A stretch of DNA of 64,000 bases from Trichoplax adhaerens (Eukaryota > Animalia > Placozoa), in assembly GCF_000150275.1 (NCBI RefSeq), contig NW_002060951.1, forward strand, positions 2,528,491 to 2,592,490, given 5' to 3'. The position numbers and the translations under genes are program-made. Below the pieces are notes generated by a model. It worked only from the letters and a program-made list of their open reading frames with translations, was not told the origin of the DNA and made no database searches. This document shows positions 50,534 through 57,226 of this stretch, in pieces. Position 1 is the first letter of the stretch. Every line of letters begins with the position of its first letter.

Positions 50534-51846
50534 GACAGTAATGGATGATGTTACTGTTCTAAGCTTTCACTGTACATACATTCAATTTACGACGGACACC
50601 AGCCTCTATCACTTTTGATATCATGGTTACATAAACTGAGCCCTTGTATCTCATTTATCTAATGAATAATCTATAACGAAAATATTTAAAGGCTTTAAAT
50701 TACTGTGTTTTAGATAGTTTTATTAGTCAGAAGACGTTTCGAGTCATGCATAGAATGTGTTTTACGTGTAATGTCTTGAATTTAAGACTGCGATACTTTA
50801 CGAATTAACCATTAATATAATAAAAGATACCAGTAATGATTGATATTGCAATTGTAATCAAGACTCATTAACCTGCTTTGAGGGCTGATAGCGCTACATG
50901 TAATACATGAACGTATACCTTGTACTGTAATATACCGAATATGACATAATAACACTTTCATGCAGCAAGCCAACGAAATCTGCTTATGTATTTTATTTTC
51001 TTAAGTGTTAATGTAACTGATATAATGTACTCGTATCACAATGCTTATCTTCGTTCTTTTGTTTCGTTTAAATAAAATTTTGCTTTTGTTTTATTATTTG
51101 TCTTGGACTTTTAGTCACTAGTTGTAATTTCAAGATAAATAGTAAAACTATCTAAATACCAATCAAATACAGTCCGTGTAGTAATTGACATTCGAATTTA
51201 CACTAGGCACAATGACATTTTGATCTTTCAAATTTTGCTGGTCAGAAAAAATTTAGAAGCAAGGATTGTTATAGTTTATCCTGTGCGTTAAATTTTCCTT
51301 ATGTTATAAGCAATTCATGGAGATAATTGGTGATAGTATACAGTATATGTAATCTGCGCATTAGATTTATTTTAAACTTTGGACTCCATCTAATTAGAAT
51401 CAAATATGGTCAGCTGTTACTGAAGCAAAAAAGTATTGATGATCACGGATCTTAAAAAATGATTTCGTCTCGCTCTTCAGAAGATGATACAGTCATTTTT
51501 CAAGTTGCCAACTGCCTATAAAAGTTCATAAAAGAAAATCAGTCTTGGCCACTGTTAGCGGTAACGATAGCGTCTGTTTTTTTTGTATGCTCTCAGTCAA
51601 CTGAAGCAAGATCGGCAGCTAAGCTTACACGTGAATATCTACCTTTATTCTGTTTTCTCACCACGTTATATAATATAATATAATACAGTACCTATACTGA
51701 TCTGGCACGGAACAGAACTAGTTGCCGTCAAGCTCTGATAAGGTTGCAATATAAGCGATACGAATACTGTACAGTACAAGAAATCATATAATTAGAAACA
51801 GAGACGCTAGTAAATCCGTAACAGCCACTTGTGGACATAATGAACA

Positions 51847-51866
51847 AAAAATTGAGAAAAAAGAAA
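51847..51866 (-). terminator. Pol III oligo-T terminator of tRNA-Phe
   Basis: TTTCTTTTTT immediately follows the discriminator base on the minus strand. Confidence 0.8.
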
Positions 51867-51968
51867 TGCCGAAACCCGGGACTGTTCAGGATTCATGCGA
51901 ATCCTCCGGATTGAACCAGGGACCTTTAGATCTTCAGTCTAACGCTCTCCCAACTGAGCTATTTCGGC
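51867..51968 (-). tRNA. trnF: tRNA-Phe(GAA) with a 29-nt insertion (candidate non-canonical intron) in the TΨC loop
   Basis: Reverse complement GCCGAAATAGCTCAGTTGGGAGAGCGTTAGACTGAAGATCTAAAGGTCCCTGGTTCAA[TCCGGAGGATTCGCATGAATCCTGAACAG]TCCCGGGTTTCGGCA. Removing the insert gives a canonical 73-nt metazoan tRNA-Phe. Confidence 0.95.
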
Positions 51969-52056
51969 TTACACATATAGAGCGATCCCTTTTGTTATAA
52001 GACATGATCTGATTATCAGATAGTGTGACAAGCGCGTGCGTGAAAAAATCAGGTCC

Positions 52057-52130
52057 GTACAGTACAGTACAGTACTGTTTACAAGTTGCGCTCCAAAGTA
52101 CTGTATTTTGTACAGTACAGTACTACAGTA
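52057..52130. repeat. (CAGTA/CTGTA)n array between tRNA-Phe and the CCDC117-like gene (divergent)
   Basis: gtacagtacagtacagtactg...tacagtacagtactacagta. Confidence 0.85.
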
Positions 52131-53145: not shown

Positions 53146-55765
53146 GTTACCGAAATCGATTCGCAATAGTAGCGGATTCCCCAGTATCTCTTCGAAGCAA
53201 TCTAAGCGAAAGGCATCCAGTGATGATGGAAGTCTCCTCGAAGAAGAGAGCAATCTGTACGACGTTTGTTAATAACTAACATATCAACTTTTAAATATCC
53301 TAAATACCATTGATGTGGTATTTTGAATATTTAAATGTAGATAGTTACAAATATTAGACTGCATAAGACGGAAATTTTTTTCAATTATTTTACTTACATA
53401 CTATAGTAGGGCACTTAATACTTACTTATTAGCCTTGGATCTGAATCTATACGTACTCGATGACGTAGATGTTAATAAATTCAATCTGATGCGAATATAC
53501 TACTGTATATTTGATTCATTACGATCCGTACAGTACAGTATTTTAGTTGCCTTACATGTTGTAATAAGTTTTAGTTATGATACTGGTAATTATAATTAAT
53601 TTGATTTTTTGGTGATGAAACATACATTCCACCCCATAGAATTAGAGCAATTATTACCCCTTCTTCATTGTAATATCTTGTGTGTAGTAGTTTATAAAAC
53701 ATTAAACATAGAAATTTTTGAACGTGATTGCTTACTTCCATTTATATAGAACGTAACTCACTTTGTCTATTTAGGGTTAGGCCAGCAAGGAAACAATTAA
53801 TATCTGAGGAAAAAATCGCAGCAAATTTAAGAAATTTGAGACTCGAAAATAATTATTCAAATGATACCGTTACTTATCAAGCGACTTTCGGTTCAGAAAC
53901 TGATACAACTAGTATTGCTCCTGAATCGAATTTATTGATTGACAGCAGCAAGCGTATAAATGGAAGACATTTTGACTGGCATACAGAAACGGAAGAGATA
54001 CCATATAATCAGCTTGCATCATCTATTAAACATGATAATCTAGGTGAAAAAATGGATTACTGTGGAACCCAAGACCTGGATGATGCTAACCGTTCCATGA
54101 AGATTACTAGCCGTGTACTAATTAAGGATCCTCTCGGAAATTTCGAGGATGATTCTTTTTCTGATGAAGAAATCGATCGGTTAGTAAGATTTTAATACGA
54201 CTAACCATTCCAATATCATATTAGGTCAGCATGCAAGCAACATCGCTATTGCATATCCTAAAATTAAATACGTACCATAAAAAAGAGAATCTAAAGACTA
54301 GACTCTGTCATGTACACTCATTGCATCGATTCTGTAATTTAGGTGTGAAGTGTTATGTCAAGTCTTGAATGTTGATTGATGCAGCGCAATATGTATTTCG
54401 AATGGCTGATCAGAATCTACTATAATGTATACAGCAGTTAATTCATAGCTGCACCAAGTTTATGATATAAGCAACATTGACGTACGCATATACGATAAAC
54501 TTAAGTTAAGCGTATATGCTTCTAGGGTTTAATTACATCAGAGTAAAATTTTTCAGTTAAACTTTAACTTTATGAGCTGTACAACTTATCGCTTCCCAAT
54601 AGTGATCACTAATTTGTTTAGACTTTAGGTAAAGCTCTTGATTGAATAGCAATTAATGCCTGAAGTAATAAAGTTTTCAATAAAACAGAAATACATTCAA
54701 GATTTATAGCATGATACTACTTATCTTATTTACTAGAAATCGCAATTCTGAAATTGTTGTTAATCGAGAAGTATTAGAGCGATTTCCTACCAGCGGAGAC
54801 TTACTAAAGGACTTCTTGCCGCAGATTTTAATCGAAAAATAGTGAGTAAAATGCACTTTAATTAGATAGTAACGTAATTTGCTGTTAAGGCTGGAATTTT
54901 AGATATTTATGTCATGATCTATGGTCATGGCAAGCACTTTTAAAAATCCTACAATTGTATTTATTGTATAAGGTTAGTGTATGAGCTAATGCATGAAGTT
55001 ATTATTGGGCTTTTATTAAATATCCTAAAGTTTAATTTATGCTCCTTATGTTATAACAGACTTTGTGGGTAAAATAATATAGATATTACAATGTTTCATA
55101 ATATTTAAACCATTTTGATCCGAAAATAGTTTATCTGTTAACTATTGAAACATTACTGAAAATTTTAAACTTTAATATTAAATGGAAATATTTATTTACT
55201 ATGGGACCACGTTATGAATTTTCGTACTTATTGGTATTGGTATAAAATATATTGGACCATATACTGTACCTCTTACACTATTTTATACTTTGCATTTTGA
55301 AAGTAATAAACCATGTTTGGAATTAATACCTTATACTCCGCAATCACAATTTATCCATAATGTCCTAAAGCAAACACAAGCGGTAAAATATTATTTTAGA
55401 AATCTCATAGGAGCTTCTTTATCACCTGATAATATCTTGATCTTAGGATTTTTCGATTAACTAATTGTAGAGTACGAGCACTGCCCAAAAAATGAGTTTA
55501 GAAGATTGTAACGAATTTTATACTCCTACAATTGATGATAAAGAACCTAATTCGGAACGTGATGTGCTTGTTGGGTAAGACAGTTTAATTTTTTTGCAAT
55601 ATCGAACGAAATATAAAACATCTATTGCATTAATCTCAATATTCTACTGCATGATCTACTGATACTTGTCATCTAATACATTATTAAATTGATTTACGAA
55701 GGGGTGATGAAGAACTTGATGACTACGACGATCTAATTGATGCCGATTATATGGATTTTACCTGA
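53146..55765 (+). CDS. CCDC117/HCFC1R1(HPIP)-like protein; 5' end uncertain, probably upstream at about 52400-52910
   Basis: Spliced KRKASSDD...VRPARKQLISEEKIAANLRNL (HPIP-like KQF.SEE.MA motif), NKPCLELIPYTP (CCDC117-like RP.MELVLW.P motif), and an acidic C-terminus ending YMDFT*. Confidence 0.55.
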
Positions 55766-56959: not shown

Positions 56960-57226
56960 TTAACCAAGGCTAACATCAGTTTTTTTTAACTTGCTTGCGA
57001 CAATACTCTTTAAAACTTGCAATATTGCATTGGGTTGTACATTAGCACGAAGAAGATCTAAAATTGTCTTGAAAACGTCTTTATTAATCCAACAACCAGA
57101 TAATCTGCAAAGAGTATAAAGTTCATTATCTATAGTATGTCCAGAGATTAAATTCCCATTTGCACTTGCAGACAGTGTGGCTTTACTAACGCTGACTTCA
57201 TTTACCAGGAAACTTTGATCTGACAT
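56960..57226 (-). CDS. MZT2: Mitotic-spindle organizing protein 2 (MOZART2)
   Basis: ELYTLCRLSG..I..DVFK.ILDLLR.NV.P.A..Q.LKS matches the MOZART2 core. Single-exon ORF. Confidence 0.85.
   Translation of the reverse strand: MSDQSFLVNEVSVSKATLSASANGNLISGHTIDNELYTLCRLSGCWINKDVFKTILDLLRANVQPNAILQVLKSIVASKLKKTDVSLG

Follow-up and report, generated by a model that had tools for sequence, protein, structure and literature searches.

Can an animal make its tRNA-Phe from a gene whose T loop is interrupted by 29 extra nucleotides, and if so, what becomes of the insert? The question is raised by a tRNA-Phe(GAA) gene of the placozoan Trichoplax adhaerens that lies within the window analysed here, by which we mean the whole 64-kb stretch of DNA. 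To our knowledge, animals carry tRNA introns only between positions 37 and 38, and we know of no T-loop tRNA intron in any animal. The animal splicing endonuclease is believed to find where to cut by taking the body of the tRNA as its measure. Because nearly all tRNA genes of Trichoplax are single-copy, a lone tRNA-Phe gene cannot be dismissed as one bad copy among many.

Undamaged Exons and Pol III Signals Around a 29-nt Insert

The interrupted gene is 102 nt long and runs on the minus strand from 51968 to 51867 of the window; excision of 29 nt leaves a 73-nt tRNA-Phe. [quoted passage not shown] The 3′ exon (51867–51881, minus strand) provides positions 59–73, which comprise the end of the T loop, the 3′ strands of the T and acceptor stems and the discriminator A73. 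In the 58/59 register the insert occupies 51882–51910 (minus strand), and shifts of up to 3 nt in the 3′ direction (as far as 51879–51907) are equally valid. It sits between positions 58 and 62 of the tRNA rather than between positions 37 and 38, where a canonical intron would lie.

The A box falls inside the 5′ exon at about 51950–51961 (minus strand). A B-box-like element, read directly from the sequence, spans positions 52–62 (51907–51917, minus strand) and survives intact, since the insert opens with the TCC that also begins the 3′ exon. Immediately 3′ of A73 we find TTTCTTTTTT at 51857–51866, followed by a second T6 at 51846–51851, so that the Pol III terminator region extends over 51846–51866 (minus strand). 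Upstream, at −32 to −27, is a TATA-like ttataa (51995–52000, minus strand), presumably a promoter element. Direct reading thus agrees with the preliminary description of the locus, made from the letters alone, in which an oligo-T terminator and an upstream ttataa had been noted. G20, G34-A35-A36 and A73, as read off the cloverleaf, are all present; we take these five positions to be the eukaryotic PheRS identity set. We saw no exon decay and no loss of Pol III promoter or terminator of the kind found in pseudogenes, as both promoter boxes (A and B) and the T runs are in place. The locus therefore is what it had been said to be, a pair of undecayed tRNA-Phe exons interrupted by a 29-nt T-loop insert, with a perfect cloverleaf on excision.

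Removal of 29 nt after position 58, 59, 60 or 61 gives one identical 73-nt product. These four registers (58/59 to 61/62) are equivalent because TCC is repeated at both borders of the insert, and the excision of exactly 51882–51910 that had been proposed to restore the tRNA is the 58/59 register among them. We built the joined 73-nt product by script and assessed it with ARAGORN and ViennaRNA; ARAGORN assigns it to tRNA-Phe(GAA), with stems of 7/4/5/5 bp in a regular cloverleaf and a T loop of 7 nt. Such a spliced product would closely match a human tRNA, to near identity. Run on the full 64-kb window, ARAGORN reported no tRNA. The Rfam model RF00005 matches 51896–51968 alone, and its score of 36.4 bits is for the sequence as it stands in the genome, without excision. 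In that alignment, the 5′ strand of the T stem pairs with the start of the insert, forming a false T arm, and the acceptor stem is mispaired. Default tRNA finders had been expected to miss this gene or label it a pseudogene, and this is how ARAGORN, Rfam and the published tRNA table (Table 1 of PMC2655684) treat it.

The Insert Is Genuine DNA

The same 102 nt, insert included, are present with identical near flanks in the independently sequenced assembly of Trichoplax sp. H2 (GCA_003344405.1, contig NOWV01000331), a contig that we reached via the MOZART2 gene 5 kb from the tRNA. Public sequencing runs were searched with a 63-nt query in which every 31-mer touches the insert, and three of its words were sampled. 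Insert-specific words were matched in 20 runs, which belong to 8 studies and carry three organism labels; with three sampled words, this count is a lead and not a measurement. The neighbouring genes, TRIADDRAFT_59089 (trichoplein-like) and TRIADDRAFT_59090, are Trichoplax genes. An artefact of assembly or sequencing, or contaminant DNA, is contradicted by the H2 assembly and the public runs; we found nothing in favour of such an origin, consider it wildly improbable and reject it.

The identity with H2 rules out an artefact and carries no information on selection. The H1 and H2 lineages differ at this locus by ~20 substitutions in 8 kb (about 0.25%), and at such near-identity undecayed exons are no proof of selection. 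One of the 20 runs, registered in 2025 as a marine metatranscriptome (paired Illumina RNA-Seq of cDNA), contains all three sampled words. This suggests the presence of placozoan RNA, possibly an insert-bearing tRNA-Phe transcript, in an environmental sample.

Neighbouring Genes and Other Placozoans

The MOZART2 (PF12926) gene is a single exon at 56960–57226 of the window (minus strand). Its orthologue, 69% identical, lies beside an INI1/SMARCB1-like fragment on a 2.4-kb ENA metagenome contig, and no tRNA is present on that contig. A 155-codon open frame of TRIADDRAFT_59090 (53728–54195, plus strand) is a conserved exon, with orthologues at 44–47% identity on scaffold_3400 of ERZ23499115 (ENA) and in the Logan assembly of SRR30664517, both from diverged placozoan-like organisms. 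Invariant blocks in these two distant orthologues include ISEEKI.ANLRNLRLE and DDSFSDEEIDRLV. The NCBI model of the gene in H1 (159 aa) matches only 28% of the conserved exon, and the H2 model is 289 aa; by this comparison of sequences, the H1 model looks incomplete. There is no Pfam family on record for the 59090 orthologues, a profile search with the exon returned no further members, and a search with the trichoplein-like exon returned only Trichoplax’s own protein.

Short TACAG/CTGTA arrays flank the tRNA gene at 52057–52130 of the window, ~90 nt upstream, and at 51767–51790. Both diverged contigs end in or near TACAG arrays (at 100–160 and 1–40) upstream of the orthologous 59090, short of the tRNA site. 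From these sequences, the arrays seem to be conserved in position and to break short-read assemblies. A scan of JGI metagenomes with an insert-tolerant tRNA-Phe pattern gave 0 matches; one with the 19-mer of the 3′ junction gave three chance matches, all within bacterial coding sequence.

The Only tRNA-Phe Gene Found in the Assembly

We searched the whole Trichoplax adhaerens assembly (105.6 Mb in 1414 contigs, about 32% G+C) for further tRNA-Phe genes. BLAST with the whole gene matched a single locus, the interrupted gene itself. A 38-nt pattern reaching from the D arm to the anticodon arm, allowed up to 3 mismatches, likewise found only this gene across the assembly, as did, among tRNAs with a GAA anticodon, a degenerate pattern of D arm plus GAA loop with up to 2 mismatches. 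The Rfam tRNA model retrieved 50 loci, and the 49 others span all amino acids but Phe, mostly with one gene per anticodon. An intronless tRNA-Phe(GAA) gene, the possibility of which had been raised in the preliminary description, was thus not found in the 105.6-Mb assembly by BLAST, the two pattern searches or the Rfam model. A looser genome-wide pattern of anticodon loop plus T loop was uninformative, with 176 matches vs 155 for a reversed control.

The absence of an insert-free tRNA-Phe gene from the assembly is the strongest argument that the interrupted gene is used. If it is the lone tRNA-Phe gene, the insert must be either excised or tolerated, and we know of neither for an animal tRNA.

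The published record agrees with our Rfam-based set. A tRNAscan-SE census from 2009 counted 49 tRNAs, one tRNA-SeC and “one tRNA pseudogene”, and its Table 1 places the pseudogene symbol in the GAA cell, with no Phe gene in the list (PMC2655684). An intact synonymous gene elsewhere, which would be expected for a pseudogene, is found neither in the assembly nor in that census. Trichoplax tRNA genes are nearly all single-copy, with hardly any duplicates or tRNA-like sequences, and the absence of tRNA-Phe draws no comment in either of the two papers (PMC2655684, PMC2888827). Our literature search found no paper on Trichoplax tRNA-Phe or on any placozoan non-canonical tRNA intron.

Five other tRNA genes bear introns (Tyr-GTA, Ile-TAT, Arg-TCG, Arg-TCT and Leu-CAA), and all five introns, 18–57 nt long, lie in the anticodon loop. 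Since all of these are canonical, the T-loop insert is a singleton in the genome, and there is no sign of a general habit of non-canonical splicing.

The tRNA set has one further peculiarity. Isoleucine codons are served by a tRNA with a GAT anticodon at C1406:2414494–2414566, ~114 kb before the start of the window, and by the intron-bearing TAT gene. No Ile-AAT gene was retrieved, and the other boxes of the A34 type (Val, Leu, Ser, Ala, Pro, Thr and Arg) use anticodons that start with A. Ile-GAU without Ile-AAU is unusual in eukaryotes. The census table gives a matching pattern, Ile-GAT without AAT (PMC2655684).

The Insert Is Structured

The insert contains a perfect 7-bp hairpin at precursor positions 64–81 (51888–51905, minus strand), with arms AGGATTC and GAATCCT around a GCAT loop and pair probabilities of 0.86–0.91. 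Directly 3′ of it, GAAC at positions 82–85 (51884–51887, minus strand) is complementary to exon GTTC at positions 53–56 (51913–51916), providing a candidate 4-bp central helix. Both features had been described at the outset, and both stood up. We examined whether this helix fits the bulge-helix-bulge (BHB) geometry, defined as a 4-bp helix followed on each strand by a loop that is cut after its second base. It does so in the 58/59 register only, out of the four.

Neither feature is common by chance. A perfect hairpin of at least 7 bp arose in 0.5% of 20,000 shuffles of the insert, and an in-register 4-bp helix in 0.8% of them when restricted to Watson–Crick pairs (6.3% with G-U allowed). The insert is clearly non-random, which need not mean that it was selected. 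Its 3′ part resembles an inverted copy of the T-stem/T-loop strand, and to judge by this likeness the GAAC may simply have arisen when a local stretch was duplicated in inverted orientation. Given the palindromic hairpin and the inverted-copy 3′ part, a single fold-back or slippage mutation could have yielded both features.

Three other origins or fates were considered and rejected. A mobile or repeated element does not fit an insert that has no second copy in the genome, even with up to 3 mismatches allowed, and in which we read no terminal inverted repeats. Nor is the insert a copy of a canonical intron, as it shows no similarity to four of the five (Arg-TCT was left out of the comparison). 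Excision of the IRE1 type, as in XBP1, is rejected by reasoning: the IRE1 loop consensus requires a cut after G on both sides, which occurs in 0 of the 4 registers.

How Far the Fold Resembles a BHB

A BHB is defined as a 4-bp helix between 3-nt bulges (PMC10485636), and its relaxed forms (hBH, HBh′ and BHL) keep one 3-nt bulge or more, next to flanking helices that exceed 2 bp (PMC3728597). The Trichoplax precursor has the 4-bp central helix with symmetric splice sites in the 58/59 register, and exact excision restores the mature tRNA in all four registers. It has neither two 3-nt bulges nor one. Given the helices that are able to form, the loops beside the central helix are 7 nt (positions 57–63) and 5 nt (positions 86–90). 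The flanking helices, h of 4 bp (49–52/91–94) and h′ of 7 bp (64–70/75–81), can be drawn only across these enlarged loops; in a strict 3-nt register the outer helix shrinks to 1 bp and the inner helix to 0 bp.

With the rest of the cloverleaf held fixed, ViennaRNA gave −31.0 kcal/mol for the normal T stem (49–53/90–94) plus the hairpin, −30.0 kcal/mol for a false T arm (50–53/60–63) plus the hairpin and −28.1 kcal/mol for the BHB-like fold of the preliminary description. The last is thus 2.9 kcal/mol above the cloverleaf-plus-hairpin fold, and its central helix has a pair probability of about 0.02. The false T arm has the highest pair probability among the competing arms, about 0.5. In these models, the BHB-like fold is predicted to be reachable but disfavoured, and it falls outside the BHB/BHL class by the defining bulge feature. 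Of the BHB-like motif as originally proposed, therefore, the 4-bp helix and the symmetric cuts remain; the loops of 7 and 5 nt are not 3-nt bulges, and the fold is a minority one.

Comparison with Known tRNA Insertions

T-loop introns are known from Archaea, for example at position 59/60, and from the red alga Cyanidioschyzon, which has four (PMC4090602, PMC3728597). The Trichoplax insert resembles these BHB-type introns in being a short T-loop intervening sequence whose exact excision gives a canonical cloverleaf and in having a 4-bp exon–intron helix with cut sites placed symmetrically 3′ of each strand. Helices of at least 2 bp, which flank the central helix of those introns, can be drawn on both sides here too, only across the enlarged loops (PMC4090602, PMC3728597). 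It differs from them in its loops of 7 and 5 nt, which conform neither to hBHBh′ nor to hBH/HBh′ (PMC3728597), and in its host, since animal endonuclease is believed to rely on a ruler that measures the tRNA body (PMC10485636). Archaeal and Cyanidioschyzon hosts also have many such introns, whereas the Trichoplax genome has one candidate.

The nucleomorph of Guillardia theta offers a eukaryotic setting with T-arm insertions. Its non-canonical introns, of 3–24 nt, lie in the D and T arms, and the T-arm insertions are mostly unable to form a BHB, yet they are removed, as seen by RT-PCR (PMC4090602, PMC3728597). Removal of an insert that lacks a good BHB thus has a precedent. The setting is not an animal nucleus, as a nucleomorph is what remains of the algal nucleus in a secondary endosymbiont, and several of its genes are affected.

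Compared with canonical 37/38 introns, of which the same genome’s five measure 18–57 nt, the insert is of a similar size. It lies in the T loop instead of the anticodon loop and has no sequence similarity to the four introns compared. With tRNA pseudogenes that have D- or T-arm insertions, the gene shares a low covariance-model score and the tRNAscan-SE pseudogene label (PMC2655684). Such pseudogenes normally accompany many intact synonymous genes (PMC4090602). In Trichoplax, by contrast, our searches turned up no intact synonymous gene, and neither the exons nor the Pol III signals show damage. T-arm insertions are usually dismissed as pseudogenes on the strength of intact synonymous genes, an argument that fails here, where the assembly yielded none.

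What Becomes of the Insert

Tentatively, and with somewhat less than even confidence, we read this sequence as a functional tRNA-Phe gene whose insert would be excised after transcription. On this reading, the interrupted gene would be the single working nuclear gene for the cytosolic tRNA-Phe of Trichoplax. RNA polymerase III would transcribe it from the intact A and B boxes to the T-run terminator, the 29-nt intervening sequence in the T loop would be removed from the transcript, and the exon ends would be joined to give an ordinary 73-nt tRNA-Phe. The likeliest machinery would be the tRNA splicing endonuclease and the RtcB ligase, which are already required for the five canonical introns. 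For the endonuclease, the substrate would be a relaxed BHB-like fold made of a remnant of the T stem, the 4-bp GTTC/GAAC helix and the 7-bp intron hairpin, with cuts after precursor positions 58 and 87. While the anatomy of the gene, its presence in two assemblies and many runs and its status as the only such gene found in the assembly are observed, as is the non-random structure of the insert, we infer that the gene is transcribed and that this enzyme removes the insert at these sites.

In support of excision, the genome encodes both the catalytic domain of the endonuclease (PF01974) and RtcB (PF01139). A eukaryotic endonuclease is able to cut archaeal-type BHB substrates (PMC4090602). Against excision, animal TSEN is described as reading the tRNA body with a ruler, which places its active sites at the anticodon stem, far from the T loop (PMC10485636).

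In a first-look search, PF01974 was found at one locus only (C1408:4584798–4585139). An animal should possess both TSEN2 and TSEN34 as catalytic subunits, and the single locus probably reflects the sensitivity limit of an exon-wise search.

The gene could instead be a dead copy or allele, disabled by a fairly recent 29-nt insertion, with the working tRNA-Phe encoded in an assembly gap or on the other haplotype. We think this improbable, at perhaps one chance in four when put into words, yet several points lean towards it: these animals are largely clonal and may carry an insert-free allele on their other haplotype, the divergence between H1 and H2 is too small for decay to be visible, and the TCC/TCC border repeat and the palindrome fit a mutational origin such as slippage or inverted duplication. 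In the same direction, tRNAscan-SE called the gene a pseudogene (PMC2655684), Rfam gives it just 36.4 bits, and a eukaryotic tRNA gene with an odd insertion in the D or T arm generally passes for a pseudogene (PMC4090602). Against it, no other GAA-anticodon tRNA was found in 105.6 Mb, with all other expected tRNAs present, mostly in single copy. The insert form is also shared by the independent assemblies of both lineages, the gene keeps its B box and terminator, and the hairpin and the in-register helix are each rare by chance.

A gene that works and keeps its insert seems to us less probable again. The 29 nt would then persist as an extra 7-bp hairpin replacing the bulged T-loop nucleotides 59–60, and every Phe codon would be read by a cytosolic tRNA of 102 nt (plus CCA), a rather unlikely proposition and an architecture that we know from no cytosol. 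Nucleotides 59–60 form the solvent-exposed ‘variable pocket’ of the elbow, which varies in length in the T-loop motifs of other RNAs. Positions 54–58 of the T-loop motif are untouched by the insert, and in the favoured folds (−31.0 kcal/mol) the T stem coexists with the insert hairpin. The metatranscriptome run with all three sampled words lends weak support as well, an abundant insert-bearing RNA being, for an animal so rare in the environment, a likelier source of them than contamination by single-copy DNA. Set against this, the pseudo-T-arm (50–53/60–63), with its pair probability of about 0.5, would misfold the body, and we can recall no natural cytosolic tRNA with a comparable T-loop expansion. 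The elbow is, moreover, a contact site for several partners, among them the ribosome, RNase P, RNase Z, exportin and modification enzymes, and next to the insert site is G20, presumably an identity element for PheRS.

Implications

The initial observation is confirmed, and in its genomic context it is stronger than the preliminary description could know, whereas the BHB mechanism is weaker than described there. By the 2009 annotation, Trichoplax would tacitly have no tRNA-Phe at all, and we found no paper that addresses this gap. If the gene is a dead copy, the published assemblies and the tRNA census miss an essential gene. If the insert is kept, an animal uses an expanded tRNA. If, as we tentatively prefer, the insert is excised, Trichoplax could be the first animal with a non-canonical tRNA intron in the T loop, and in an essential single-copy gene, although we would not yet put that at an even chance. 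Such excision would bring processing of the archaeal and red-algal style to Metazoa, and it would imply that the animal endonuclease has a body-independent mode in vivo.
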